A stretch of DNA of 64,000 nucleotides from Antechinus flavipes (taxonomy: Eukaryota). The stretch is from contig NC_067400.1 in the NCBI RefSeq assembly GCF_016432865.1, positions 612,002,001-612,066,000 on the forward strand. Reading direction: 5' to 3'. Position 1 is the first letter of the stretch. The number at the start of each line of letters is the position of its first letter. Made by a program: the position numbers and the translations under genes. Positions 1,721 through 29,200 of this stretch are shown here, in pieces. A model generated the notes under the pieces. That model did not search any database, was not told where the DNA came from, and saw only the letters and a list, made by a program, of their open reading frames with translations.

Positions 1721-2253
1721 GGCCGCCCTTCGAGGCTGCTTCCCCCCACATCTCCCCCTACGTCTGTCCCTCTTCCTCGATCCTCCCCCCACTGCCCTCC
1801 CCCCAGTTTTTGTGATCCCTCTACTTGAGTGTCCCTCCCCACACCCCGTCCCCTCCTCTCCTTCCCAGAGCCCCTCTTGGGAAACCCCCAGACCCCTCCC
1901 CTCTGACCCGCCGCTCCCGGATCCCCTCAGACCCCTCCCCCTTCCAAATCTCCCCTAGGACCTCCACCCTGTCCCTGCTCCTCCTCCGTCCCGCCCGCCC
2001 GAATCCCTCTAAGCTCTTTCCTTAATTTCTCCGTGCCCCTCCCACCCCCTGCAGACCCCTCCCTCCATCCCGAGATCCCTCCCCTTACCTCTTTACCTGC
2101 CCCATCGACTCTTCCTAGCTCCCCCCCTTTCCCTCCCAGTGACGCCCCGAGCCTCTGTGAACGCACGCTCCCCATGGGCCTTCTGCCCTCCCCCTGTCAG
2201 GCTCTCCCGCGTGTCCCTGGCCCGGCCCTGGGCTGACCAGTGGGCAGCCCCTC

Positions 2254-5200
2254 ATGCCCACACTGCCCCCTCACTGCCCCGTGGAGCTGGGCTCCGTCAG
2301 TGAGCGGGACAGCCCCCTGGCCCAGCTGCACCAGCTGGCCATCGTGGGCGGCCCCTGCTGGCGGCTGGCCAGGGTCCTGAAAAAAGGTGACCCGCCTGGG
2401 GGAGGGCTGGGCCTGGCGGGGGCGGCGGGGAGGCGCCGGGCAGGTCCTGAGGCTCCCCGCCCCTCTTGCGCCTCCCAGGGGTCCAGGTGGATGGGGAAAA
2501 CTCCCTGGGTCAGACCGGCCTCTTCCTGTCGGCGCTGCTGGGCCGCGCGGGCGCCGTCCGGCTTCTCCTCCGTTTTGGAGCCGACCCCAACCAGTGAGTG
2601 GGCGGGGCCCCGGCGCCCCCTCCCCCCAGCCGAGCCCCCTTGGCTCCTCCCCCCCCCCCCCCCCCCCGTGGGACTCCCGGTGACTGGGCTCCCTCTGCCC
2701 GTCTCTGCTCCGCAGCCGCTGCTTGGATGGAAGCACCCCGGTGCACGCGGGAGCTTTCTCCGGCCACTGCCAGGTCTTCCTCTGGCTGCTGGAGGCGGGG
2801 GGAGACCTGAGGCTGCACGACCAGCAGGGCTGGACCGCGGGGGACTGGGCGCAGCAGGCTGGGGCCGAGAGCTGGCAAGTGAGCAGGGCGCGGGGCCCCA
2901 CGGGAGACGGGCGGGAGGGCCGCGAGCTGCCTCCGCGGCGGGGCCCGTCACTGACGGGGAGGCTCCAGCCGGGACTCCCCGGGGAAGGGCGGCGGGGACA
3001 GCCCCCACGCTTGAGCTGCAGAGGGTGGCCCTGGGGCGGCCGGAGACCCCGCCCTGGCCCGGGGGCGTGCCCAAGGGCGGCAAAGGTGGCTCCGGGTGCT
3101 GTGGCAGGGGCCTTTCCCGGGGCGCCCCCCAAAGCTGCTCCATCCCACCCCCTGTTGTAGGTCTTGGAGCTGCTTCGGGAATGCCGAGCCCGAATGTCCC
3201 TGCTGGCCCAGGGGGGCGAGACGGCGCTGGCTTCGTCCTTGGGGGAGCTGTGGGGGCTCCGGGCCGGCTCTCTGGGAAACCTGCACCTGGCCCTGTCCTC
3301 GCAGCTCCTGCCTCAGGCCGAAGGGTAATGGCCCATGCTGCTCACTCCTTCCCTTCCTTGCCCGGACCCTTCTCCCGTGGCCCTGCTGGGCGCTGACCTC
3401 CCCCCCACCCCCAGGTCACTGTGGCCCAACCGGATCCAGCGGTCGCCCCAGGTGCCCGGGCTGGGATTTGGCCAGGTAGGCGGGGGTGCCTGTGGCTGGG
3501 GCGGGGGGCGGGCGCCTCCGGGACCTGCTGAGAGCGTCTCTCCCCCCCAAAGCTGAGCAGCCTGAGACCTCTCGGCCTGACGTCGGGGGTTCCCCTGGTT
3601 GATCCTGAGGAGCTGCTGCCAGCTCAGGGGGAGCCCGACCGGACCTACGAGTGCGGCGCCCACACCATTATGGTCAAGTGAGAGAGCAGGGAAGGGCCTC
3701 GGGGGCCTGTCCATCCAGCGCCAACTCCAGTGACCCCCCCCCAGTGACCCCAACCCCAGTGACCCCCACCCCAATGACCCCAACCCCAGTGACCTCCGCC
3801 CCAGTGACCCCCGCCCCAATGACCCCAACCCCAGTGACCCCCACCCCAGTGACTCCCACCCCAGTGACCCCCGCCCCAGTGACCCCAACCCCAGTAACCC
3901 CTGCCCCAGTGACTCCCACCCCAGTGACCCCCGCCCCAATGACCCTAACCCCAGTGACCCCCGCCCCAGTGACCCCCACCCCAGTGACCCCCGCCCCAGT
4001 GACCCCCGCCCCAGTGACCCCACAGGACCCCACTCCCAGCCCTCCCTGCTGGCCCCCTCTCCCGGGGCCCCCCCTCACTCTTCGATTTTGGTCTTTTACC
4101 CTAAAGTCTCTTGTGGAGGGGACACCCGGTGACTGTTCGGAAATTGAAGCCGGCCCCCGCCCGGGCCCTCCCGGACCTGCTGCTGTCTGACCTGAAGCAC
4201 TGCAGGTACCTCCTGCTGGGAGCCGGCCTGCAGCGCCGCCCCCATCCTCCAGGGGGCCTGTTGGGCACCTGCCCCCTCCCCCCGCCCCGGGCACCGCACT
4301 CAGGGCTGGCGCCCACCAGGAGCCTTCCCCGCCCTCGAGCAGCTTCTTCCCGCTCCATGGAGCCTCCAAGGGACCCGCAGAGGGAAAGCCCCCAGGAGAG
4401 GGGGGGCTGGCGCCCACCAGGAGCTTCCCCTGTCTCCACAGCCTCCTCCATCACCCCAACTTGCTGCTGCTCATGGCCCTGAGCCCCTCCCCCGACCTGG
4501 CCGGCCTGTGCCTCCTGTTTGAGCCCATCCAGGAGGGCTCCCTGCACCGGGTGCTGCACTCCCCCGGGGTGAGCTGGCCGGCCGGGCCAGAAAGGGGCGG
4601 GGCGGGGGGGAGGGGAGGGAGGATGGAGGAGCCGGCCTCAAGGGTGAGGGGACAGACCCTCCTCCTCAACCTGGCTCAGAGTGGGGGCGGGGGGGGGGCT
4701 GCGGCCCTGGTCCCCGCTCCTCTGGAGACAGGATGGGATGCTGAGGCACCCGGAGGGGGAGAGGCCGTGGCGGGGTCACTGACCGTGCCCACTGCCTTCT
4801 CTCCCACTAGGATGCGGCGGGCCCCAGATTGCCCCCTGGATTCCCCCCGGGACAGCTGCTGTTACAGGTGCTGGAGGCCCTGCTCTTCCTCCAAGGCCAG
4901 GCCCGGGCCCACGGGGGCCTCAGCTCCCACGCCGTCCAGCTGGTCCGACCAGGGCTGGCCAAAGTCAGCAACCTGGAGCACGGACGGTCCCTGCCCCGGC
5001 CCCAGTGAGTGAGCCCAGGGGCCCAGCTGTGCTCTGCCCTGCCCCCCCCGGCCCTGTCCCCTCCGGCACTGCCCCCCCCAGCCCTGTCCCCCACCCTGCC
5101 CCCCCCGGCCCTGCCCCCCCCGGCCCTGCCCCCTCCGGCCCTGTCCCCCCCACCCTGCCCCCCCCAGCCCTGCCCCCCCCGGCCCTGCCCCCTCTGGCCC

Positions 5201-7654
5201 TGCCCCCCCGCCCTGCTCCCCCCGCCCTGCCCCCCTGCCCTGCTCCCCCCGGCCCTGCCCCCCCGCCCTGCTCCCCCCGGCCCTGCCCCCCCCTCCCTGC
5301 CTGCCCCCTCCGCCCTGCCCCCCCCGGCCCTGCCCCCCCGCCCTGCCCCCCCGCCCTGCCCCCCCCGGCCCTACCCCCTCCGGCCCTGCCCCCCCCTCCC
5401 TGCCTGCCCCCTCCGCCCTGCCCCCCCGCCCTGCCCCCCCCAGCCCTGCCCCCCCGCCCTCCTCCCCCCGCCCTGCCCCCTCTGGCCCTGCCCCCTCCGG
5501 CCCTGCCCCCCCGCCCTGCTCCCCCCAGCCCTGCCCCCCAGCCCTGCTCCCCACCTCCCCCCTTACTCTCCCCCTGGGCTCTGCAGGCCAGAGCGAGCAG
5601 TTCCGTGGGGGGGCCCAAGGCCAGGGCCGCCTCCCCCCCCTGAGCTGTACCCCTGGCTGCCGCTGGAGCTGATTCGGGGGGACTCGCCCACCCCGACGTC
5701 GGACTTGTACAGCTTCTGCATCTTGACCCAAGAGGTCTTTACCGGTTGGTGCCCCCCACTGTCCTCCTGCCCCGACCCCCGCGCTCTGCCTGCCGGCCGC
5801 CCCTAACCGCCGCTCACTTTCCCTCCCGCCCCCTCCCACCGTGCTGCAGGGAGCCTTCCCTGGGCTGGGCAAGAAGGCCTGCAGGTCAAGGCGAAGCTGG
5901 AGTCCGGGGAGGGCCCGGCCCTCGCTCCCCAGGTTCCCCCGACCTACCAAGCCCTGGTCAAGGCGGGCCTGAGGGTGCGGCCCCGAGACCGGAAGGGCAG
6001 CCTGCAGGACGCCCGCTACAAGCTCAGGGTGGCCTTGGCTCAGGTACCGCCCGGGGGGGGGGGGGGGGCGAGGCTGGGAGGGGAGCCAGGCGGCCGTGAC
6101 AGGGCTGTCGGTCCCCAGGAGTCCACGCTCAGAGAAGCCTCCATGGGCACTGTGGGCAGCCCCTCCTCCGAGCTAAAGACCCCACCGCCGCCTCCCGGGA
6201 AGGAAGGCGACCACTCTCCTTGCCCTCCCCACGCGGAGCAGCTGCCGGAGCTGGATCCCAAGGTCACCAGCACACCCAGGCCTCCGTCCCCCAAGATGGC
6301 CCCCAACCCCAACCCGTCGGAGGTAATGGGGGTGCCGGTGGGAGGGAGACGGGGGGACCGGGCCGGGGCCACTGAGAGAGGAGGCTCTGGGTCCCTCCGA
6401 TGCCTCCCTAGACCTTGAAGTCCCCCGAGAGCGGCGGGGCCTGGGGGAACGCCTGGAGCCCCCCGGCCTTGGACTCGGGAAGCAGCCTGACCCTGGGCAG
6501 CAGCCTCAGCCTGAGCTCCCAGCCTGAAACGGCCTCGGCGGAGAAGAGGAAGCCGGCCAGTCCGGAGGTAGGGAGGGCCCCGGCCCCCACCTGCCTCCCC
6601 CCCCCCCCGGCCCCCACCTGCCCCCGTTCCCCCCCCGGCCCCCACCTGCCCCCCCGCCCCTTCCTCGGGCTCCCCGCTGACACAGCCCCTTCCCCCTCTC
6701 AGCAGAGGCCGGCCCTGCTGACCAGCCTGAGGGAGTCGGCCTCCCTGCTGGGCCAGGCCCAGGGCTCCCTGGAGAGACTGGAGAGGAGGTTCTCGGCCCG
6801 GATCCGGGCCCTGCAGGATCTGCTGGGAGATGGCCCCGAGGCCTCGGCGGCCCCCTCCACCTGCCCCCAGAGTGAGTCGGCCGAGGGCCCCCCCTCCCCG
6901 CTCCTGCCTGTCAGTCATCGAGCCCCGCCCCCATGCCCCCCTCACCTCTTCCCCCCGCTCCCCAGGTGCCCGAAGTTTTCAGGAGTGCATTGACCTGGCG
7001 GCCCAGGCCCGGCGACTGGACAGACAGGAAGGGAGGACGCAGGTAGGGAGTGGGGGAGGGGGGGCAGGCAGGGAGTGGGGGAGGGGGGCCCAGGCAGGGA
7101 GTGGGGGAGGGGGGGCAGGCAGGGAGTGGGGGAGGGGGGGCAGGCAGGGTGGCATTTTGAGGCGCCCGAGTCCAGCAGCCATTAAGCGGGGCGTGTGGGG
7201 GCCCACTGGCCACACAAGATGACCGAGAAAAAGTGGCTACTCTTGGGAGCTGCCCTTAGGAGGCGCACTGTGGGTGTTTGACTAGCATGAAGCACCTACT
7301 GTGTGCCAGGTCGTGCCCCCTTCCTTCCCAGGTCCTGGTCCCTGAGCTATCCAAAGAGAGCCCCTTCACCAGCCTGCAAAAGTAAGCTCCCCTTCCTTCC
7401 ACTTTCCCGACCTGCTCCATCCAAGCATTTCCAACTTGCTTTGGGGTCTCCCTCCTGACCCTGACCTCGTTTCCCCACCCCCAGGCTAGACCTGCTAGAG
7501 GAGATCATCACAGAGCTACAAGGTGAGGTGGGGGATGGTGATGGTGTGGGTGTGGGTGAGGGGCCCACTCCCCACCCCTAACGGGGTTTGTCTGGCTCTG
7601 CCGTCGTGACCCCTCCCACTCTGCCCCTCAGGAACCCCCAAACCAAGGAGCTGA
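2254..7654 (+). CDS. TEX14-like ankyrin-repeat pseudokinase (paralog of TEX14), about 749 aa
   Basis: 18 exons, all GT-AG, phases consistent: 2254-2386, 2479-2593, 2716-2878, 3161-3324, 3415-3475, 3553-3677, 4107-4205, 4442-4568, 4811-5004, 5587-5744, 5850-6043, 6119-6322, 6412-6567, 6703-6871, 6966-7042, 7332-7381, 7485-7522, 7632-7654 (2250 nt, ends TGA). The translation resembles human TEX14 as I recall it: CPVELG; [15 protein letters not shown]; [20 protein letters not shown]; AGGDLRLHD; GFGQ; NLLWRG..VTVRKL; LSSHAVQL; SNLE; ELYPW..SDLYSF; [17 protein letters not shown] at 7711-7716. The last 3-4 exons are less certain. Confidence 0.9.
3727..4022. repeat. 15-bp minisatellite (CCAGTGACCCCCACC) about 20 copies, TEX14-like intron 6
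   Basis: Direct tandem units visible; explains the VTPTP/GVTGA ORFs. Confidence 0.9.
5030..5550. repeat. C-rich about 14-15 bp tandem repeat (CCGGCCCTGCCCCCC), TEX14-like intron 9
   Basis: Near-pure C/G repeat; the minus strand carries dense G-tracts. Confidence 0.85.
7043..7148. repeat. G-rich tandem repeat (GGCAGGGAGTGGGGGAGGGGGG) about 4 copies, TEX14-like intron 15
   Basis: Direct repeats directly after the donor at 7043. Confidence 0.75.
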
Positions 7655-8241
7655 GTGTGGATCGCCCGGCCAAGTCGAGCTGGTGTCTGTCGGCCACCTG
7701 ACCCCAACCCAATAAAGCTTCCCCCGCCCGCCACCTTCTCCCTGCCTCTGACTCTGTCGCGATAATAGCACCAGACAAGGCTCCCTCTTGGTTTTCACTT
7801 TTATTTGTTAATGTTAAAATCTGCTTTTGGGCCGGGGCCGGGGCTGGGCGGGACTCTCAGACACGCGCACACGCACACCCCCAGAGCCCTCCTGGGCACA
7901 CATTCGCAGCTGCACGTGGGGGGGGGAGGGCATGCTGGGGGACGCTGGGGCTTGGGGGAGATGAAGTTCATCTTGTCCCAATTAGTGCAAGAAACCCCAG
8001 ACGTGTTGGGGGGGGGGGCAGAAAAACTACGACAGGTCAGGAGATCGGAGATCACATCAGAACCAGTTTACAAAGTTAGAAACTTGAGTAGGGAAAAAAT
8101 TACAAAATGGATTCGAATTGGGGATGGGGGCCCCAGGGCCAGTGATGGCAGGAGGGTCCGTGGTCATCAGCAGGCACACCCAGCTAGGGCCCCAAAGCTT
8201 CCCATTCAACATTTTACAAAAAGGCGAGGGGATCTCCAGCC

Positions 8242-11200
8242 TCAGCAGTAGCTGTGAGTCTGGCCCTTGGCATGGAGGGTCCAGCTTGGGGGCGGGAGGT
8301 AGGAGGGTGGGGGGCCAGCCCCCTCTCCGTGTCCATCGCCGACATTTCCATATGGGACCCCGCGAGGAGCCTGGGTGGGGGTCCTGTAGAGGAGGAGGGG
8401 ATCCGGAGGGCCCCAAGGTCGAGGAGGCCGGGGCCCCCAAGGTGAGCGCTGCTTGTGAGGGAGGCGAGGGGCTGGGGGGCCGGGGTCCGAGCGACTTCGG
8501 GGGTGGGCGGGAGGGGAGGAAGAACAAGAGGAGGAGGTAGGGGAGGGCCCTCCCCCACCTAGGGGCAAGTTGACGTAGACGGGTTCCAGGTGGGCCGGAC
8601 GTCGCCGGGATTCTTGGGGGTGGTAGCAGAGGCGGCCGTGTTGGGAAAAAGGCTGCAAGGCCGGGGGGTAGGGGTGAGGAGGGGGGGGAGGGTAGCAGAA
8701 GAGGAAATCGGGAGGACCCTGGGGCGGGGAAGCAGTGAGTCCCTCGGGGGCCTGGTGGAAGGGGGCCCAAGGCCGAGGCAGGCCCGGATAGGGAGGGCCC
8801 TCGGCCCCACTGATCTCATAGTACAGGCTTTCCCCCTTGTCGGGGGGCAGCGTGGGACCGCGGGGAGTCCTCCGGCTGGGGGGCTGGGGGCTGGGCCTGT
8901 AGGGAGGAGCAGCGAGGGAGTGCAGAGGGGGCTTGGGGGGACCAGGGAAGGGCGAGGGGCGCTCCTTGGGGTTGGGAGAGGTCACAGCAGCAGAGAAGGA
9001 GGCGGGCACCTGCGGAGGAGGAGGAGGAGGCGTTGAGGGCCGGCCGACACCTCCCGGGGGTGCGAATGCGAGCACAGCTTTTGGGGGGCTGGCCGGGGCC
9101 TTTCGTGCTCACTCACCTGGGCAGGACCTCGTCGTTCCCTCCGTGGGGGGCCAGAGACATGGGGGCGCAAAAGGCCGCCGTCGCTCTGCTGCCGCTGCAG
9201 GGAGGCCGGGGGCCCCAGGGCTTGGGGACTGGAGCTCCCCATGGAGTAGAGGGGCCCAGAGCCCCCCGTCCCTGGGCCTTCCCCACCGGCTTCCAGGGAC
9301 AGGGAACGTCGGAAAGGGGAGCGAGGGATGGGGGGGACTGTGCCCCCCAGCTCCTGCTGGCGCTGACGCTGGGCCGCCCTCTGAGCCCGCTCAGCCAAAG
9401 CGAGGGCCATCAAGCGGGCCGGATTCTTGGGGGGTGGAGGAGGGGCCCCTCCGGGCCGGAGGAGAGACAGGGGCACAGGTGGCCCGGGGCCTGCACGGGG
9501 GAGACCACACGGGCCTGGTCAGGAGTGTGGCAGCAGACACAGGTGGGGGCGGGGCGCGGGGGGAGGTGGGAGCCCGGGGGGTGGGGGGTGGAAAGGAGGG
9601 ACCCCGGGGGGTGGGGAGGGAAGATTACTCACTCAGTGACCCCTGCAGGTCTCTCTGGCAGGTCAGGGACAGCTTGCTCCGGATCTCCCTCTGGCAGCTG
9701 TCGCTCAGCTCACTCTCGGCACTGCGCAGCAGGAGGGGGATGAGCTGGGGAGCCGGGGTGGCAGGCGGAGGGGAAGGCGTGGCAGGGGCACCGCCCCCCA
9801 GCAGCTCGAGCACCGCGGGGGGCACAGAAACGGCCACCGGCTCCGAGATGTCCAGGGCGGTGGGCGGGGCGGGGCTGGCTGGGCCCCGGGGAGAGCGAGG
9901 GGGGGGGGTGGCTTTATGGAAGAACGAGCCCGCGGGGGCTGGGGGGGCAGGACTGGCGGGAGGGGCGGGGTCCCCAGGGGTGGGGCTGCTGCAGCGGAAG
10001 GTGAGGGGATCGAAGTCGAGGCCCCTCAGCCCCTCCAGGCACCGTGGGGGGCTAAAGTCCAGGTCATCCCCATCGTCCAGCCAGGCCGAAACCCGGTGGG
10101 GGGGGGAGCCCACCAGCTCCCCGCTGCCCACGGACGAGGTGCTGGTGGAGGAGGACGATGACGAGCTGGAAGAGAGGCTGTCGCAGGAGCCGGCCGGGCC
10201 CGGAGCCACGGGGAAGGCGTCGCTGCTGGAGCGGGGCCGGCGCAGCCGGTGGAGCCTCTGCAGGCCTGCGGGGGGAGGCGGGGGGCTGCTGGCCCCTGGC
10301 GGACCACAGACCTCCCTCCTCCCCTCCAACTCTCCCAAGTCTGCCCACGTGGAGACTCCCCACGGGGCTCCTTGTCCGACGAGGGCCCCAGACAGAAGCC
10401 GGCTCCAGGAGCGGAGGGCCCATCTCTGGGTGCCCACTGCCCCCGATCCTCCCGGAGCGCACCCCGTCTCCCTGTACCCCCGCACTGGCACACTTAAAAT
10501 CAGTGCTCTGGAGTCAGCCCGGGGGTCCGGGTTCGAAGCCCTCGTCGCCACTCTCGCCATCCCACCGGACACCTGTTCCAGGCTCTCTGTGGCCCTTCCG
10601 TCTGGCTCCCAGCTCCCCCTCCCGCTCTCCCTGGCACCCCTCCCTACTCCGCTGGGCCCAGAGCAGGCGGCTGCCCCACCCCCCTCCCCGGAGCCCGGGC
10701 CCGGGGGATCCTCACCGGCTCCGCTGGTCTGGGACGACAGCGACTCCTCGCTCTTGGCCGCCCGCAGCGGGGCTGCTTCCACTGGACCACCTAGGAGTCA
10801 GCAAGAGCCAGGAGGAGAGTGTTGGGAAGCCCACCCCATCCCCACCCCGTCTCGGGCTCAGGCTTCTCGCTCACCTGGGGGCGGCTGGGACCCCTGGCCA
10901 GCTGCACGCCAGGGCAAGGGCTTCTTCCGGACCGAGGAGGGGCCTCTTCCCAGGGCAAAGAAGGTCTTCCAGCTGCTGCCCCCCGGTTTCCTGCGCTTCT
11001 CCCCAAAGATGCCCTTCCTCCTACACGGCACAGGGGGGTGAGATGGGCCGGCCTCGGGTCAGGGCCCCTGCCCTCCTCCCCCCGTCCCGGGGTCACTCAC
11101 TGGTCTTCAGGTGAAGGAGGAGCCTTGGCCCCCTGTGCGGACAGCCGACCCTGGGACCGAGCCTGAGCCTCCTCCAGGGAGAGGAGGCGGGTGGAGGGTC

Positions 11201-14200
11201 CGCCGCCCACAAGGGACTTGGGCCTGGAGAGGAGACAGCGACCTGGGGGGAGGACGGTGGGAAAGTCCATCAGTTGAGCCAGCCATCCCAGGGGCCCTGC
11301 AGGCAAAGCCAAGCGCAGCCCCCCTCCCCCCTTCCCCCCGGGAGTCCTGGCAGGCCAAGCCCCCGGCCAGGGATCAGCAAGGCAGGGACCCTGGGGTGGG
11401 GGGAGTGGGAGCGGGGGGCCGGGGACATCGGGGGAGGGGGAGGGCATCAGCGACAGGCGAGGAGGAGGCAGAGGCGGCAGCAGCTGCAGGAGGAAAGCCG
11501 CTTCAGTTACCTCGGGAGGGCCCGGCCGATGATCCATGTCCCGCAGGGGTCCGGGGTTTGTGGGGCGGGGGTGGGAAGGAGAGAAGGGGACGTGGCGGGG
11601 GTTTCTTGGGAAAAGGTCATCTCTAAAATGGGGGGAGAGGGTCTTCAAAGCCAAGGGAGCTGGGAATCCCAGTCGTATACCATCGATCCTATCGGCAGCC
11701 CCCCTCCCCCCCAGTTTCCCCTGGTCCCAAGGGGGCCCCGAGGGAGCTAAGGGAGGGTGGTGGAGATGCAGCGTCCGGGACCAGTGGGGGATCCTGAGTC
11801 GAGGAGCTGAAATGAGAAGGAGGCTGGGGAAGGGGGAAGGGGGCCGGGTTCTTGGGGTCCCGGGCCGAGCTGGAGGCTGGCAGAGATCGTGGGGCCCGCC
11901 CCGCCCCCAGCCCGCGGCCTCCATCTCCCCGAGCGCCCGGGAAGCCGGCGTACCTGCAGGATCCAGGCCCGCCGAGGCGAACGTGTCGCTGAATAAAACG
12001 TCCACGTGGCTGAGCAGGAACTCCACGACCACGGACTGGACCCGGACCTCGCGGAAGGCCGCGGCGCCGCCCAGGCCCACCGACTCCAGCTCCATCGACC
12101 TGTGGGCACCAGGAGGCGGGGCTCAGGGCGGCCGCAGATGCAGCTCAGGCAGGGGGGGGGACTCGCGGCGGGGGGACCCGCCTCCCGGGGCTGGGGCGCA
12201 CTCACCGGAGCAGGTTGGGGGCCCACACGATGGCCAGGTTGCGGGCGTGCATGCTGGTGTTGGCGCTGTGCTGAGCCATGCGGGAGAGGTGGCGCAGCAG
12301 GTACTCCAGGGTCCTGGGGGGGGAGCAGGCGCACTCACTGACCCCCGCCGCGCCGAGCCCTCCCCACTCCCCACCCGGCCCCGCCCCAGCCGGCTCTGGC
12401 CCCGCCCCAGCCCGTCCGGCCCCGCCCCGGCCCCGCCCCAGCCCGTCCGGCCCCGCCCCAGCCGGCTCTGGCCCCGCCCCTGCCCGCCCTCGCATACCGG
12501 TAATGAGGCGGGGGCAGCTGCTGGATGACATCGTGAACCCGGACCAGCCGCTCCTCCTCCCCGGGCACGGACATGGCCTCCTGGGGGAACAGGGCCCGAG
12601 TGAGCGCGGACCGGGCCGGGGCCTCGGGCCGCAGGATCCCCATGCGACCCCTTCCCACTTACGCTGAATTTCCCGTAGAGCTGGTAGGTGAGCAGGGGGT
12701 TGGGCAGCTCTCGGAAGTAGAGCTTGCAGAGGGAAGAGACGCTGTGGATGTCCTGGAGGAAGGCCGGTCCGCGCAGCTCGGGGATCCGCTCGCTGTCAAA
12801 CTCGTGCCTGAGGGCCGCGGGGGGAGAAGCTGGGACCTCCCCAGGCCCGGCCCCCCCCCTTCAGCCTCTCCCCGCCCAGCCTTCGGCCTCCTGACCTCAG
12901 TTTCTGGATGTTGGAAGAAACGCCCGAGAGGCGGTAGATCCCGTCCACAACCCCGTGGGCCTCGATGAACTCTGAGCAGCAGCGCAGGACTTGGGGAACT
13001 ACAAGGGGGAGGGCAGAAGGGAGCACCATCAGGTGCGGGGGATGGGGAATAGACAAGGGGTTGGGGAGGACAGAGCCAGGTAGAGAGGGATGCCCCATGG
13101 GGGGTGGGGGAACCTCCAGGAGGGCCGTGTGTTCATTTCTAAGATAGTGACAGCTTTAGCTGAGATCTGCATTCAAATCCTGCCTCTGGCCTTGGCTAGT
13201 GACCATGAGGCATATCACCGAGCCTCAGTTTTCCCATCTGTAAAGTGGGGGTCATGCTTCACGAGATTACCAAAAACAGCCAACGCGACACTGTCAAGTG
13301 CTTTGGGTGACAGAACTAACAGGGTGGGACCCCCGGAGTCGGGAGGGCCGGGAACTCACCGTCTTGGCCGGAGTTGCTGAGATGCTCTCCAAGGTCGCAG
13401 CCGAAGACGCGCTGCCGAAGGATGCCCCGCTGCCTTAGCCGCTGCCGGGACGGGCGGGAGCGAATGAAAGAACGCAGGAGGCCCGCGAGCTTTCCTCGGG
13501 GCCGGGGCACTGCTCAGCGGGGGTGGCGGCGGGAGAGAAAGAGGGGATTCAATGTCAGGGAGAGCCACGGCCATCGAGGGCGGGGGGTCTGGGGTGGGGC
13601 CCAGGGGATGGCAGCCCCACTTGTTACCTGCTGTTAGAGAGGGAGGGCCCTCCCTTAGGGGAGCCGGGATGCCGGATGTGGGGCCGTCGGGATCTGTGGG
13701 GGAAACCAGCAGCGATGGCTCCAGGTCCCACCCCTCCCCCACCCTCTCCCTGGCACTGCCCGCTCCTGGTTACCAGCTTTGACCCCCAGGCCCGGTCGTT
13801 CAGTGAACAGTTCCACACACTCACTGGGGAAGAAACCGACCTGAGGGAAAGGGCCAAAAGCCAAAGGTCAGATGGTCCTACCATCCCTCAGGGTCCATAC
13901 CCTCCCCTACCCCTTTTCTACCTGGAATCCATGTTTCCCACGCCACCAGCTTCGGTCCTCAGTGGGCGGCATGTCAATCACAGAGACGATGTCACCAACC
14001 TGAGAATGGGGAGCAGTGGGAGTCAGGGGGGGGGCAATGTTCTGAGCAAGCCCTGCAGCCCCTTCCCCTAAAACATCACCTCAAAGGACAGTTCATCCGG
14101 GGCCTGGGCCGTGTACCGTTTGACCACGTGCGCCGCAGCCACCGCGGGGACGTTCAGGGAGGCCTCCTCGCTGAGCAGCAGCCGCCGGCCATGGTTATCC

Positions 14201-17019
14201 AGCTGGGAAGGAGCAGGAGGTGGAGGCGGGGACCCTCACACGGCCTCGCTCCCCTCCTCCCGCTCCATGTGGCCCTTCTGCCCCCCCCCTCCCCCCGATT
14301 TCCCAAGCTGCGTCTGACCCACACCCTGGCTCCTTCTCCCCTTTCCTGCCTCCGGCCCTTCCCACAGCCCACTCTACTTCCTTCCCCGCTCCTACTCTCT
14401 CCCTCCCTCCCTTTCTCTCTCCCCTCTTCTCTTCTTCCCTTTCCCCTCTCATCTATCCCTCCTTTCCCTCTTCTTCTTCTAAACGCCCCCACCTCCCACC
14501 CCTACCTCCATCCAGGTGAGCACAGGGCCACAGTTGAGGTTGCTGTCCACCAGCCCAGAGAGGGTCTCGAGATACTCGAGGAGCAGGGGCACCAGGAGCT
14601 GCGTGGGGACGAAAGAGGCCTGGGGATGAGGTGGAGCCAAGGAGTCCCCCCTTCCCACCATTGCTCCCTGGGGCAGGGGGCGGGGGCTCTACCTGGCTCC
14701 GGGAGCCCTCTGGAGCCGGGGGCAGCTCTGGGAGGCGAGAGAAGCGCCGGTCAAAGATGCAGCGGTGCAGGTGGCTATCCAGGGAGCGGAAATCTTCATA
14801 GCTTCGCAGAACAGGCCAGGACCGGCCCTGGGGGAAACGGGGGCAAGCAGGGACCAGTGACACTGTGGACCTTCGGCTGGAGAAGGTTCAAGGGCCAGAA
14901 GCTGGGATGAATTGGGGGCAAAGCTAGTTACTGATCGGTCGGGGTAGGGTCTCACCTGACAGGTCACCTGGACCCCAAACACCAGCTCATTATCACTAGG
15001 GAGATTGGAGCCTTCGCGATCTGGAGACAACAGCAGCTGAAAGGGGAAATCAAGGCCCCAGGGCCCAGGACTCGTGGGCCTTCCAACCCCGCCCTCACCC
15101 CAATGCCTGAAGCCGGACAGACACCTCACAAAAAGGGACAGAGCAGGCAGGGGGGAAAGGGGCTGCTGGTGGGGGAGAGTAGAGGGATGGGGGTCAGCTT
15201 GGGGACACCTCATGCTGCCATGGCCAGAGAGGGGGGACCTTAAGTACCTGAATGTGGCCAAAATCGACGTTCTCATAGTGGAAATGGGCACAGTCAGCCA
15301 GCCGGGGAAAAGGGCCCCGAGGGGCAGAGACCCTAGGGGTGCAAGTGACAAGTCACCCGGAGCGTCGGGGCTCAGGCCCTGAAGCTGCATTTAGAGCCGT
15401 GATCTCCTCCAGAATCGGGGAGACCTTGCAGAGCTCAGGAGGTGCCCTCACTCCGACAATCCCAAGCAGCGCCCACCACTTCCTACCTCTTGCCAGGTTT
15501 CCCTTTCACGTTGGAGCCCCCCGAAGGGGGTAGGGGCTGCACCGGCCCCTCCCCCGGACCATCCAGGTTATCTGTGCTTCTGGCCTGTGGGAAGAGAATG
15601 AGGCCTGAGGAAGTCTCCCCCGGAGATCTCCGGGCCCCAGGGCTATCACCAAGTGGCCGCAGTACAAAGGGAAGTCCTCAGGCCTCTCGGGGGGCAGCGA
15701 GGGGACCCTCCGAGCAGGAGCCGGCCCTCTGCGACGAGATGCCGGGAACTGCTCAGCAGGGGCCCGGGAAGGAGGTGCTATTATCCTATTTACAGATGAG
15801 GAAACTGAGGCAGAAGCAGGTGTCAGAGGCAGGAGTGAGATTCGCACCCCAGGCCCTGCGCCATCCACTGCACCACTGGCTGCTCCATGAGATGGAACAG
15901 GAAGGGTTAAGAGGGGGAACACAGGAAAGGAGATGCTGCCCTACAAGCCCAAACAGGAGAATGTGTGGACAGAGCAGGGAAAATGAGGGGTCATAAGGAA
16001 AGGGGGGCAGAAAAGCCCAATCAGGAAGAGACAAGAGGGAGGGCTGGGCCCCGCCACAGCTGGAAGGCAAGGCTATGAGGGCACTGGAGACCCCCAGGGC
16101 AGAAGGGCTGCTCAGGGCCTGGGGCTGGGAGTGGGTGGGAATGTGCCGGCAGGCGGCCAAGCAGAACCAAGGCTGGGCTACGGGCAGGGTGGAGACCCTG
16201 GGGGGATGGAGATCTCAGAAAGGGGGGAGGGAGACCCCGGGAGGGAGAGATGGAAACTCCAGAAAGGGAGGATGGAGACCCAGGGAGGAGGCAACAGAGA
16301 ACTCTAGGAGTGGGGGACGGAGACTATTAAGAGAGAACAGAAACCTTGGGAAGAAAAAATGGAGAGCCCAGGAGGAAAGGATGGAGACCTTGGTAGTGGA
16401 GGATGGAGGCTCCAGAAAGGGAGGATGAAGGATGGAGACCCTGGGAAGGGAGGATGGAGGCTCCAGAAAGGGAGGATGAAGGATGGAGACCCTGGTAGTG
16501 GAGGATGGAGACTATTAGAGGACAGAGACCCTGGGCAGGAAAGATGGGAGAACTTAGGAGGGATGGATGGAATCATTGGGGGAGGGGGGATGAAGACAAT
16601 TGGAGGAGAGGAAGGATGCAGACCCTGTTAGGGAAGGCTGGAGACTTGGAGAGGATGGAGGTGGCCGGTGGGAAAGATGGGGACTCCAGGAGGGGAGGAC
16701 AGACTATTAGAGGAGAGGAGGGAGCCTCCAGGAGGGGAAGATGGAGACCGTGGATAGGAAAGATGGAGATCCTGGAAGAGGAGGATGGAGACCGTGGTAA
16801 GGGAAGACGCCTCCACAGACTCTGGGAGGGGAGGGCGGAAACCCAGGGAGAGGAGAGCAGATACGCACTAAGGGGGGAGGAGGCCATGGGAGGAAAGGAC
16901 GAAGACACGCTGAGGGAGGAGGACGCCCTGGGAGGAGGACGGAGGCCGCCGAGTCTCCGTGCCCCGCCCCGCCCCCACACCCGGCAGCTGGACACCGCCC
17001 CCGTCCCGCTCACCACCAT
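8242..17019 (-). CDS. ARHGAP33: Rho GTPase-activating protein 33 (PX-SH3-RhoGAP), about 1234 aa
   Basis: 22 coding exons (minus): 17019-17014, 15584-15487, 15332-15248, 15036-14956, 14827-14693, 14598-14506, 14202-14080, 13999-13922, 13840-13774, 13693-13628, 13509-13360, 12998-12896, 12807-12663, 12580-12498, 12313-12206, 12099-11954, 11242-11101, 11020-10875, 10790-10716, 10265-9633, 9490-9117, 9009-8242 (3705 nt). Diagnostic peptides: MVARSTDNLDG, HFHYENVDFGHIQ, WWRGKHGFQVGFFPSECV, VDGIYRLSGVSSNIQKLR, PPPPKNPARLMALALAER, GQTHSYC*. AATAAA (minus) at 7800-7805. Confidence 0.97.
13150..13265 (+). mobile_element. CORE-SINE (MIR/Mar1-like) fragment
   Basis: ttcaaatcctgcctctg...gcctcagttttcccatctgtaaa matches the MIR core. 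Confidence 0.65.
15775..15850 (-). mobile_element. CORE-SINE (MIR-like) fragment
   Basis: tttacagatgaggaaactgaggca is the reverse MIR core. Confidence 0.6.
16150..16940. repeat. Degenerate purine-rich tandem repeat (GGAGGATGGAGACCCTGG family), ARHGAP33 intron 1
   Basis: Recurring ggaggatggagaccc / ggctccagaaaggg / gactattagag motifs, including an exact about 48-bp duplication near 16400-16500. Confidence 0.7.
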
Positions 17020-26208: not shown

Positions 26209-29200
26209 TCACTGGCGCTCATACATCTCGCGCAGGATCTTCATGCTCTCGGAGTACCGCAGCTGGTTCCGATGGGAAGCCTCCTTCCACCTGGGGGACA
26301 CAGGCTGTCAGGGCCGGGCCGGCCTGCGGGCGGTGGGGGGTGGGAGCAGCTTTGGGGCTGGGGGCCACATACCTCTGCCTGATGCGTTTCCAGCGCTCCA
26401 TGTTGCGGTAGATGAGGGAGGACATGGTTGGGGCTGTCTCGGGGGGCTGCGCAGAAAGCGGGAGAGCCAGAGTCAGGCTGGGGAGCTGCCATACAAGCAT
26501 CCTCTTCCCCCCATAGGCCCAAGACCTGGTCCAGCTCTTCCCGAGAGCTCCTAGAGGGGCTCCAGCATCCACTTACCGGGTCTTCAGAGGCCTCCTGGCC
26601 CTCTGGCCGAAGTGGGGAGGGGATCCTGGGGCTGGGGGCTTCCCCAGAAGGGCAGGGGGCGGTGGGGGGCGGCAGCTTGTACACGTCTCGGCTCTTACCG
26701 TTGGTGACCTCAGTTCCCTTGGAAAAGAACCGGCCCCAAAAACCCGTGTCAGGTCTGGCATGGGGAGGGCAAGGCCCACCTTCCTCGCTGCCCCACAGCC
26801 CCGGCGTCCTCACCTCCTCATCCTCCGGCCGGGGAGCTGGGGGAGGGCTGGGCGAGCGCTCTGGCTCCCGCACCGAGGGGCAGTTGCGCATCCAAGCCCG
26901 GCAGATGGGGTAAAGCGGCGTGTTCTCACTGAACTGGGCCAGGTCCACGCTGCGGTCAAACAGCTTGATGGTGTAAGTGTCTGGGGGGTGAAGGGCGAAG
27001 GTCACAAGGACGCCAGCGAGTGCGGGCTGGCCGGCTGACCCCTCAGCCCGGCTCTGCCCCCCCACCCACTGGCCCACTTTATAGACGAGGCCGGCCTTGG
27101 ACTGGGCCTCGGGCTTCCTGCCGGGCCCGGGGCTGCTTGTCCCCGACAACGCCCTTCTCACCGACCACACTCACTGGGTCTCTGCTGTCCCCCCTCGGCG
27201 AGCCCATCCTCCATCTCCTTCCTCTTCTTCCTTCTGTGATGGGGGAACCGAGCTGAGGGCCTGTGAGGGAGAGGGATGGAGAACTGACTGGACAGAGGCT
27301 TGAGGTGGACCCGGCCTAGGGGGCCCGCAGGGTCTGGCTAGGGGCCCAGGCCAATGCCACGGTCTATTGCAAGACAGCAGAGGGGGCTGGGCCGGACAGG
27401 AGTGGGAGGAAGGGAGACCGGGATAAGGGGGAAGAGTGAAGGGCGGCCCCAGAGACAGAGCCCGGGCAGAAACCGCCCCCCCAAGCTTACCGTTTGCCAG
27501 CTGAGGTGAGAGAGCAGTCCCTAAGGGAGGAGAGAGGCAGCGTCACCCCAGCCCCGGAGCATCCCACGCGGCCCCTCCCCCCAAACCTGGCCAGCGACCT
27601 ACTTGCTGTGAGCATCGGAGGGCGTTTTCCCGGCCTCCTCCTCCAGCTGGTCCCTTTGGGGGAGACAACGACCGAAGCTCAGAACCGAGGGCCGAGGCTC
27701 AGACGGCCTCCAGAATCAGCCCGCTGTGCGGCTGGACAGCTCCGGCCCCCAGAGGCTGGAAGCCCGCCCTCTGCCTGGGCTGGACCCTGGGGATCAGGCG
27801 TACGGGTCTCCCCAGTACCTCACCAGCCCTAATCACCGAGCCCCTCCCTCTCCCCTCCCCCAGAGGAGGCTCTGAGACGGACGAACTTCTGACCTCAGCC
27901 CGGCCCCCAAAGCTGCCCCCCTCACCGGTCCACGTCACTCTTCTCCAGCAAACACTGCAGGACGGCGTCCAGGTGGTTCCTGGCTTTGGACATCTCCAGC
28001 TCTGAGGGGGCAGAGAGCGGTCGCTGCCGGGAGGCCCGTGGGCGTGGGGCAGAGCAGGAGGAAGGGGGGGCGAGCGGCCCCCACCGCCCACGGATGCTCC
28101 CCGAGGTTCCAGCCGACCCTCCCACACAGGAATCCTCAGCGCTCGCTCCCATCTTTTCCTTCCTCCCCTAAGTCAACCAGACGGAGGCCCCATCCCCCCT
28201 TCCCTGTGGTCCCGCATGAACCCTGACATCTTTCCCTCCTGCTGGGAGTCTCCTTTGTCCCTCCTGGCCCACTCTCCCGTGGGCCCCTGGAGCTCCCTCC
28301 CCAGATTCCAGGAGCCAAGAGGCTCCCCTCGGGGTCTGTGCCTGGGAGGGAAAGGACTCAACCTGTCTCCAGGAGGCCCTTCGTCCTCCCCCTCCTAGCA
28401 AGTCTTAGTAGGCTTAGGGCTTCTTCCAGCAAGTATCTCCCCTTCTCTGAAGAGGACAGCTCTCTTTCTGAATCCACTGCTCCCCAATGCTCCCTCCTCC
28501 TCCTCCAAGCAGCCACCTGCACCTGCCATTGCTCCCATCTTCTGGGGTAGTGCTCCCCAATGCTCCCTCCTCCTCCTCCAAGTGAGCCACCTGCACCTGC
28601 CATTGCTCCCATCTCCTGGGGTAGTGCTCCCCAATGCTCCCTCCTCCTCCTCCAAGCAGCCACCTGCACCTGCCATTGCTCCCATCTTCTGGGGTAGTGC
28701 TCCCCAATGCTCCCTCCTCCTCCTCCAAGTGAGCCACCTGCACCTGCCATTGCTCCCATCTTCTGGGGTAGTGCTCCCCAATGCTCCCTCCTCCTCCTCC
28801 AAGTGAGCCACCTGCACCTGCCATTGCTCCCATCTCCTGGGGTAGTGCTCCCCAATGCTCCCTCCTCCTCCTCCAAGTGAGCCACCTGCACCTGCCATTG
28901 CTCCCATCTCCTGGGGATGTCTTCCATAATGCTCCCTCCTCCTCCTCCAAGCAGCCACCTGCACCTGCCATTGCTCCCATCTCCTGGGGGCAGTCTTCCT
29001 CAACGCTCCCTCCTCCTCCTCCAAGTGAGCCTCCTACACCTGCCATTGCTCCCATCTTCTGGAGTAGTGCTCCCCAATGCTCCCTCCTCCTCCTCCAAGT
29101 GAGCCTCCTGCACCTGCCATTGCTCCCATCTCCTGGGAGCAGTCTTTCTCAACGCTCCCTCCTCCTCCTCCAAGTGAGCCACCTGCACCTGCCATTGCTC

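Follow-up and report, generated by a model that had tools for sequence, protein, structure and literature searches.

TEX14-like of Antechinus flavipes, a probable ancient and constrained paralog of TEX14 encoding an ankyrin-repeat protein with a dead kinase fold

The gene on the + strand at 2254–7654 of the window, the whole 64,000-nucleotide stretch of Antechinus flavipes DNA that was analyzed, is the already annotated "TEX14-like" gene, whose mouse symbol is Arhgap33os (formerly Gm1082). We are highly confident in the explanation as a whole, namely that it is the A. flavipes ortholog of vertebrate TEX14-like, an ancient and constrained paralog of TEX14 that would encode a dead-kinase scaffold. 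This old, strongly constrained paralog has kept the ankyrin-pseudokinase module and two C-terminal motifs, is missing the CEP55-binding motif, and is apparently unstudied.

Results

The gene was rebuilt from the raw window as 18 exons (Table 1), and all 17 introns began with GT and ended with AG. The coding sequence of 2250 nucleotides consisted of 749 codons and a TGA stop codon, and the public record CM028219.1 (GCA_016432865.2) independently yielded an identical chain of exons. An earlier sequence-only reading of the window had proposed 18 GT-AG exons joined into a 749-amino-acid ORF with its own AATAAA, which was confirmed, and had remarked that no single ORF spans the gene, which was borne out: the exons are spread over all three frames, and the whole gene is therefore absent from any single ORF. 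The spliced product was 100% identical (749/749 residues) to A. flavipes XP_051844881.1, which is titled inactive serine/threonine-protein kinase TEX14-like isoform X1, and TEX14-like orthologs were annotated in more than 60 vertebrates. Since the exact protein is in RefSeq, its orthologs are annotated, and a mouse symbol has been assigned, the gene is not new as a discovery. The many RefSeq isoforms of TEX14-like only hint at RNA support.

Table 1. Coordinates of the exons and the polyadenylation signal of A. flavipes TEX14-like in the window
Feature	Position	Strand	Remarks
Exon 1	2254..2386	+	ATG at 2254; N-terminal CPVELGSV segment and first ankyrin-module helices; donor GT
Exon 2	2479..2593	+	Ankyrin repeat; weak Ank matches from the exon alone
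Exon 3	2716..2878	+	Ankyrin repeat; STPVHA...GGDLRLHD block, richest in family-invariant residues
Exon 4	3161..3324	+	Helical linker past the ankyrin repeats; model helices 124–185
Exon 5	3415..3475	+	Linker; model confidence low here
Exon 6	3553..3677	+	Kinase-like N-lobe begins
Exon 7	4107..4205	+	Beta3 strand VTVRKLK; Arg at the VAIK lysine position of active kinases
Exon 8	4442..4568	+	AlphaC to hinge
Exon 9	4811..5004	+	Catalytic-loop equivalent HGGLSSHA vs. HRDLKxxN; DFG equivalent NLE
Exon 10	5587..5744	+	Activation segment, PLE for APE, helix F; PK_Tyr_Ser-Thr profile positions 169–199
Exon 11	5850..6043	+	Kinase-like C-lobe ends
Exon 12	6119..6322	+	Disordered Pro/Ser-rich linker; pLDDT <50
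Exon 13	6412..6567	+	Disordered Ser-rich linker
Exon 14	6703..6871	+	Long helix, residues 634–673; aligns with the TEX14 helix immediately preceding GPPx3Y
Exon 15	6966..7042	+	Second C-terminal helix, residues 693–708
Exon 16	7332..7381	+	Conserved C-terminal motif PFTSLQK begins
Exon 17	7485..7522	+	12-residue motif, conserved family-wide
Exon 18 (coding part only)	7632..7654	+	TGA stop codon at 7652–7654
Polyadenylation signal AATAAA	7711..7716	+	

In the encoded protein, three ankyrin repeats precede a dead kinase fold, which is followed by a disordered linker rich in Ser and Pro, a long helix, and a short C-terminal motif that is conserved. In a Pfam search of the whole protein, Ank_2 matched residues 37–115 with 35 bits (cut-off, 27.3) and PK_Tyr_Ser-Thr matched residues 261–494 with 45 bits (cut-off, 23.1); the domain calls needed the whole protein, as exon-by-exon searches gave sub-threshold Ank and kinase matches only. 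The AF2 model was confident in the ankyrin and kinase-like domains. When exon 3 was searched at the protein level, the best 150 matches were giant multi-ankyrin proteins, because the scores sum over repeats, and were uninformative about TEX14. Designed ankyrin proteins dominated the PDB sequence search with the whole protein, and the kinase part alone was used instead. Comparison with MLK1 (3DTC) and the family alignment revealed replacement of Lys by Arg, HRD by HGG, Asn by Ala, and DFG by NLE. An active kinase was rejected, as the VAIK Lys, the HRD Asp, the catalytic Asn, and the DFG Asp are all lost. HGGLSSHA and SNLE of the window gene corresponded to HRSLSSYA and TNLE of TEX14, and the same degenerate pattern, in which the HRD Asp is absent and N/S/G-L-E/G replaces DFG, was found from molluscs to mammals. 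Over 50 sequences from vertebrates and molluscs had invariant residues in common.

In a Foldseek search against the Swiss-Prot AFDB models, ranks 1–3 were held by mouse, human, and bovine TEX14 (E = 1e-39 to 3e-38; 29% identity over query residues 3–742), and ILK came next at E ~1e-17. HMMER matches of TEX14-like to TEX14 proper scored 170–260 bits. When the first 11 introns were compared with those of fish (Triplophysa) tex14, nine occupied the same alignment column with the same phase, and the remaining two of these N-terminal introns had the same phase 2–4 columns away. A processed retrocopy was rejected because the gene has 17 GT-AG introns, of which 11 agree with those of fish tex14, and the earlier description of the gene as an intron-retaining paralog and not a retrocopy was thereby supported. 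Judged by its alignment and intron positions, TEX14-like is evidently an intron-bearing, DNA-level paralog of TEX14.

A tree built with TEX14 using IQ-TREE agreed with this paralogy, which the sequence-only reading had put forward. It contained a clade T of ray-finned fish and tetrapod TEX14 (support, 98/94) and a clade L of TEX14-like from sharks and rays, amphibian, reptile, and mammal (97/93), and the window gene fell in clade L, apart from the TEX14 orthologs of clade T. Geotrypetes (a caecilian), Hyaena, and Perognathus each had one gene in each of the two clades. GPPx3Y (GPP...Y), the motif by which TEX14 binds CEP55 (PMC13216642), was found neither in the 749-residue protein nor in any other clade L protein, whereas 14 TEX14-type (clade T) proteins of the set had it. 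The beta3 Arg was found in every L-type protein in which that segment was modeled correctly; together with WLPLE in place of WAAPE and the lack of GPPx3Y, it makes up the L-type signatures of the window gene. L-type genes were found in reptiles, amphibians, and cartilaginous fishes, and since clade L includes these groups and is separate from clade T, the duplication predates tetrapods. The T/L duplication is probably older than jawed vertebrates. With cartilaginous fishes falling in clade L and ray-finned fishes in clade T, reciprocal losses are implied, although this placement of the fishes comes from a single tree whose branches are long and whose sequences are heterogeneous in composition. 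The tree also had a long mammalian stem of 0.6 substitutions per site.

No canonical TEX14 was found for Antechinus or any other marsupial among the sequences examined, which would fit a window gene that is the sole TEX14 of the genome, that is, a translocated and shortened ortholog and not a paralog. We consider this very improbable, because the gene groups with the L-type genes of the three species named above that have a separate T-type gene, carries the L-type signatures, and has its locus in common with eutherian L-type genes. In addition, a T-type TEX14 is present in a monotreme, Tachyglossus, so that its loss from marsupials would have to have occurred separately. The locus of the paralog TEX14-like differs from that of TEX14 proper as well. 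Fish T-type tex14 adjoins SKA2, as we take human TEX14 to do in the 17q22 gene order, and the window gene was found not near SKA2/RAD51C but between Pro_dh and SH3-RhoGAP genes. In Antechinus, the Pro_dh gene (PRODH2, + strand) lies upstream of TEX14-like on the same strand, the SH3+RhoGAP gene (ARHGAP33, − strand, 1234 amino acids) lies downstream in convergent orientation, and LIN37 follows further on, being the only Pfam match among the other large ORFs of the window. The sequence-only reading had likewise pointed to the ARHGAP33-PRODH2 interval, and this statement on the flanking genes holds. A convergent SH3-RhoGAP gene was also found downstream of TEX14-like in Dromiciops, Vombatus, and Notamacropus. 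Peromyscus (deer mouse) showed the same order as Antechinus, with Pro_dh upstream and a convergent 1312-amino-acid gene downstream, and read-through PRODH2 fusion models were present in several eutherians. As the turtle L-type gene is not adjacent to PRODH2 or ARHGAP33, synteny was demonstrated within mammals only.

TEX14-like is retained by marsupials, most eutherian orders, reptiles, amphibians, and cartilaginous fishes. Annotated eutherian orthologs were found in rat, Mus spicilegus, Mus caroli, Peromyscus, squirrel, rabbit, carnivores, ungulates, and bats, and further in hedgehog, sloth, armadillo, lemurs, loris, and the New World monkey Saimiri. They were 55–66% identical to the Antechinus protein, with the same locus and domain layout, and formed the sister group of the marsupial genes with 100/100 support. 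In the sequence-only reading, the gene was a TEX14 duplicate that marsupials alone had kept and that eutherians, among them mouse and human, had lost. There was no catarrhine or human protein among the 240 matches listed, and papers treat the human LINC01529 interval as non-coding. However, the eutherian orthologs, which extend from rodents to xenarthrans, lemurs, and Saimiri, the common gene order in Peromyscus, and the sister-group relationship leave a restriction to marsupials with virtually no probability. The absence from mouse was also mistaken, as the Mus ortholog is annotated under the symbol Arhgap33os. TEX14-like is thus not a marsupial speciality, since most placental mammals keep it too. 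A loss confined to catarrhines is possible, and the human ARHGAP33-PRODH2 interval is, we assume, annotated as the lncRNA LINC01529.

TEX14-like is under strong purifying selection. In the one species pair compared, Antechinus and Dromiciops, dN/dS was 0.129 (bootstrap, 0.10–0.17) with a dS of 0.455 over 736 codons; it ranged from 0.03 to 0.15 in the folded parts and was 0.30 in the disordered linker (residues 513–630). The sequence-only reading had treated the gene as intact and maintained and had named a ratio of about 1 as evidence to the contrary, and its view is upheld by the value obtained. Annotated models were about 680–750 amino acids long in nine marsupial species and 749–751 amino acids long in three dasyurids. 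Some models might suggest a decaying or non-functional copy with a frame kept open by chance or by annotation choices: the Sarcophilus model skips exon 10 and is frameshifted, some models skip exons 14–15, the Dromiciops model drops 75 nucleotides within exon 12, and the exon 14/15 helix is apparently missing from eutherian TEX14-like models, whereas marsupial, reptile, amphibian, and shark proteins keep it. Such decay is exceedingly unlikely against the low dN/dS, the model lengths among marsupials, the canonical splice sites throughout, and the invariant residues from vertebrates to molluscs, and a pseudogene was rejected as contradicted by the selection test.

Discussion

TEX14-like seems to be a gene known by annotation and functionally uncharacterised. 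A literature search on TEX14-like, TEX14L, and TEX14 paralog or pseudogene found no paper on the gene and none describing its function, and the word "paralog" does not occur in a 2026 review of intercellular bridges (PMC13216642). In the papers examined, Arhgap33os figured only as a gene-list entry and was once placed among GTPase regulators by its name. Apparent matches to Gm1082 in PMC8003990 were rejected, as the text has Gm10824. The literature search found no paper for SgK424 and no mention of NKF5 in the papers listed. The NKF5 family of the human kinome presumably consists of SgK307 (TEX14) and SgK424, and the latter might be the human counterpart of TEX14-like. If there was a coding loss in catarrhines (LINC01529), it would explain the absence of TEX14-like from human kinome work.

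We infer that TEX14-like would act as a non-enzymatic scaffold, as TEX14 and ILK do, its putative protein-binding surfaces being the ankyrin-pseudokinase module, the C-terminal helix, and the C-terminal motif. Since GPPx3Y is missing, TEX14-like should not bind the CEP55 site used by TEX14, and in that case an abscission block of the TEX14 type would not be expected from it. The suggestion of a second germline-bridge module found no support, since no L-type protein has GPPx3Y, the CEP55-binding motif to which TEX14 owes that role. TEX14-like may have other partners in common with the N-terminal module of TEX14. It is conceivable, though we regard it as doubtful, that TEX14-like is a CEP55-independent modulator or counterpart that shares partners with TEX14 in germ-cell or cytokinetic biology, and that the coding gene was lost in human and other catarrhines, leaving LINC01529.

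Comparison of TEX14 with TEX14-like could help to reveal the role of the TEX14 N-terminal module. In TEX14 (testis-expressed 14, an intercellular-bridge protein; Q8IWB6 and Q7M6U3), too, three ankyrin repeats precede a kinase fold that is missing both the HRD and the DFG aspartate, and TEX14 of Hyaena and of the caecilian Geotrypetes has the same Ank_2 and PK_Tyr_Ser-Thr layout as TEX14-like. The two proteins are about 29–33% identical and have in common the alignable helix and a C-terminal acidic/leucine motif, in accordance with the earlier proposal that the ankyrin/pseudokinase N-terminal half was kept along with C-terminal helical parts. As had also been estimated, TEX14-like (749 amino acids) is about half as long as TEX14 (about 1450–1530 amino acids), from which it differs in having no counterpart of the final ~300 residues and of the greater part of the central disordered region, as well as no GPPx3Y and no beta3 Lys, which is Arg in TEX14-like. 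The two also differ in locus, PRODH2-ARHGAP33 for TEX14-like and beside SKA2 for TEX14, and belong to separate clades. In ILK (integrin-linked kinase), N-terminal ankyrin repeats precede an inactive kinase fold serving as a scaffold in the same order, but ILK is only 18–19% identical to TEX14-like and has neither the long disordered tail nor the C-terminal helices, and nothing in the analysis points to parvin/PINCH partners of the ILK style for TEX14-like. ILK ranked second among the groups matched by structure in Swiss-Prot and also appeared among the PDB sequence matches.

Gene model and coding constraint

When the region 1800–8200 was read and its exons were chained by script, they gave a TEX14-like gene of 18 exons at 2254–7654 on the + strand, in which all 17 introns had the form GT...AG and the acceptors showed good polypyrimidine tracts. 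The CDS of 2250 nt encoded 749 codons followed by TGA (7652–7654), and the G+C content of the region was 68–75%. The gene was invisible in any single ORF because its exons occupy all three frames. This independent chaining reproduced exactly the exon model, 749-aa ORF, and AATAAA proposed by the sequence-only reading. The model was already present in RefSeq; it showed 100% full-length identity with entry P0160 (XP_051844881.1), the TEX14-like isoform X1 of Antechinus flavipes. By coordinates, the minisatellite assigned to intron 15 starts about 4 nt upstream of the exon 15 donor (exon 15 end = 7042).

Comparison of the window gene with its Dromiciops ortholog by the Nei-Gojobori method (736 aligned codons, one species pair) gave a dS of 0.455 and a dN of 0.058, with a dN/dS of 0.129 (bootstrap interval 0.10–0.17). 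This low ratio indicated a constrained protein-coding gene, and we conclude that the window gene is real and functional.

Features of the TEX14-like gene, its product, and its neighbours
Feature	Position	Strand	Remarks
Minisatellite, GC-rich	3727-4021		intron 6; 15-mer x19.7
Minisatellite, GC-rich	5036-5552		intron 9; 15/28-mer array, about 520 bp
Minisatellite, GC-rich	6578-6660		intron 13; 28-mer x3
Minisatellite, GC-rich	7039-7149		intron 15; 25-mer x4.4
AATAAA of TEX14-like gene	7711-7716	+	poly(A) signal
Reverse-strand AATAAA	about 7800-7805	-	presumably of ARHGAP33
ARHGAP33 (SH3+RhoGAP, 1234 aa), CDS	about 8242-17019	-	convergent with TEX14-like gene
LIN37 coding exon	about 26241-27170	-	Pfam LIN37, E 1e-29
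Ankyrin part	residues 1-140		dN/dS 0.07
Helical linker	residues 141-245		dN/dS 0.03
Kinase-like domain	residues 246-512		dN/dS 0.10
Disordered linker	residues 513-630		dN/dS 0.30
C-terminal helices	residues 631-749		dN/dS 0.15

Locus and distribution among mammals

The order on CM028219.1 (GCA_016432865.2) was the Pro_dh gene PRODH2 (+), the window gene (+), and ARHGAP33 (-). The two AATAAA signals at the convergent 3′ ends lie just ~90 bp apart. The order agrees with that of human 19q13.12, and the position of the LIN37 exon confirms a 19q13.12-like order in the window. In Peromyscus, the TEX14-like gene likewise had a Pro_dh gene on one side and a convergent gene of 1312 aa on the other. RefSeq read-through models in several eutherians joined PRODH2 to the TEX14-like gene (P0183, P0194, P0196, P0200, P0205, P0229, and P0271, all annotated eutherian proteins); since these fusions carry the PRODH2 name, the pseudokinase gene is hidden in those annotations.

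A first protein search with the 411-codon stop-free stretch 2161–3393, its search region limited to exon 1, matched "inactive serine/threonine-protein kinase TEX14-like" of Tasmanian devil, koala, and tammar wallaby. The koala protein was the query of a second search (187 matches), and a 1173-aa natural PRODH2 fusion, admitting longer candidates, that of a third. Orthologs were found in at least nine marsupial species (Antechinus, Sarcophilus, Sminthopsis, Dromiciops, Vombatus, Phascolarctos, Notamacropus, Macrotis, and Monodelphis). The matches listed also covered a broad spread of eutherians, namely rat, Mus spicilegus, Mus caroli, Peromyscus, hamsters, squirrels, chinchilla, and rabbit; many carnivores; ruminants, pigs, camelids, horses, bats, and hedgehog; sloth, armadillo, and tree shrew; and, among primates, four strepsirrhines and Saimiri. 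In a mouse array list, the mouse symbol Arhgap33os carries the Entrez gene number 100504207, and the title of a cattle entry, "gene model 1082-like", derives from the former mouse name, Gm1082. The annotated orthologs, the Peromyscus locus, and the PRODH2 fusions thus indicated that the gene is retained in eutherians, including mice; the sequence-only reading had erred in proposing its loss from eutherians and its absence from mouse. Marsupial-specific retention was rejected on the same evidence. The window gene is a TEX14 paralog that had been annotated before and is widely conserved.

L-type proteins (L, TEX14-like; T, TEX14 proper) of catarrhine primates, birds, crocodilians, and monotremes were absent from the matches listed in the second and third searches, which we regard as a lead only. 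A literature search by gene names found no paper describing the TEX14-like paralog, and in the papers examined Arhgap33os occurred only as a gene-list entry. The gene remains of interest because no functional study was found and because the coding gene may have been lost in the human lineage.

Age of the TEX14 and TEX14-like genes

The third search recovered TEX14 proper of 1370–1530 aa from hyena, pocket mouse, bat, echidna, a turtle, turkey, caecilians, a frog, and fishes, and L-type proteins from a caecilian, a newt, sharks, and rays, together with one lamprey and two mollusc sequences. Both a quick tree of 61 sequences and a careful IQ-TREE tree (57 sequences, 503 columns of the ankyrin and kinase region) contained two clades. 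Clade T (98/94) comprised ray-finned fishes and tetrapod TEX14, and clade L (97/93) comprised cartilaginous fishes, then amphibian, reptile, and mammalian TEX14-like proteins, with a long stem of 0.6 substitutions per site below the mammalian L clade in the careful tree. The window protein fell within marsupials (100/99), whose sister group was the eutherian clade (100/100). Clades T and L were each represented by one gene in Geotrypetes, Hyaena, and Perognathus, and this membership places the T/L duplication, as judged from the trees, before the tetrapods. If the shark placement holds, the duplication would predate jawed vertebrates, and sharks and ray-finned fishes would have undergone reciprocal losses. 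The loach T-type gene adjoins SKA2, which is also a neighbour of human TEX14.

Exact exon chains were mapped for four genes (Antechinus, Dromiciops, turtle, and loach), and the introns were projected onto one alignment. In the window gene, introns 1–11 span the ankyrin and kinase-like domains; compared with loach tex14, 9 of the 11 coincided in column and phase, and two had the same phase 2–4 alignment columns apart. A retrocopy was rejected from this agreement, which bore out the earlier proposal of an intron-bearing paralog. The Dromiciops RefSeq model (5374–5448 of its locus, L004) excises a 75-nt GT-AG "intron" within the exon 12 equivalent; the excised piece is in frame and stop-free, so the "intron" may reflect how the gene was annotated and not be genuine.

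The L-type gene of green turtle (Chelonia mydas CM026903.2, 10001–21883) neighbours V-set Ig and ADP-ribosylglycohydrolase genes, and neither PRODH2 nor ARHGAP33 was present in the flanks of this locus. Because these neighbours are unrelated, L-type synteny was demonstrated within mammals only; either the L-type locus relocated or the mammalian arrangement is derived. Two opposite-strand genes, one with an EF-hand, were called inside the Chelonia gene span.

Protein anatomy and the CEP55-binding motif

Pfam located Ank_2 at 37–115 and PK_Tyr_Ser-Thr at 261–494, the same layout as in TEX14. The closest sequence relatives of the kinase part were TKL-type kinases (MLK1, MLK4, and CTR1), TrkA, and ILK. 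In alignments with MLK1 and with the family, the beta3 lysine was replaced by Arg (an L-clade signature shared with lamprey), HRD by HGG, and DFG by NLE, and the catalytic Lys and Asn were absent. Catalysis is excluded by these residues, and the protein is predicted to be catalytically dead. The lamprey protein carried the L-type signatures Arg at beta3 and WLPLE in the family alignment.

An AlphaFold model from a 52-sequence alignment (mean pLDDT 72, pTM 0.65) was confident in the ankyrin module, the kinase fold, and helix 634–673, and disordered in between. A structure search of Swiss-Prot ranked mouse, human, and bovine TEX14 at the top (E about 1e-39, query 3–742 on TEX14 6–737), followed by ILK (E about 1e-17). 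Helix 634–673 aligned with the TEX14 helix just ahead of GPPx3Y, and the C-terminal 25 residues ([19 protein letters not shown]) matched a motif that molluscs through mammals conserve and that sits near residue 1200 in TEX14.

TEX14 binds CEP55 via GPPx3Y, out-competing ALIX and TSG101 and so blocking abscission (PMC13216642). A motif scan of the sequence set found GPPx3Y in 14 T-type proteins; no protein placed in clade L had it. The window protein shares the N-terminal module and two C-terminal motifs of TEX14 but lacks its GPPx3Y. With a dead kinase, the kept N-terminal module, and the missing motif, it may be read as a non-catalytic scaffold retaining these shared parts, which would be unable to act on CEP55 the way TEX14 does. 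We infer this scaffold role, as we would any partners of the protein. In the family alignment, the helical segment of exons 14/15 was absent from eutherian TEX14-like models and kept in marsupials, reptiles, amphibians, and sharks.
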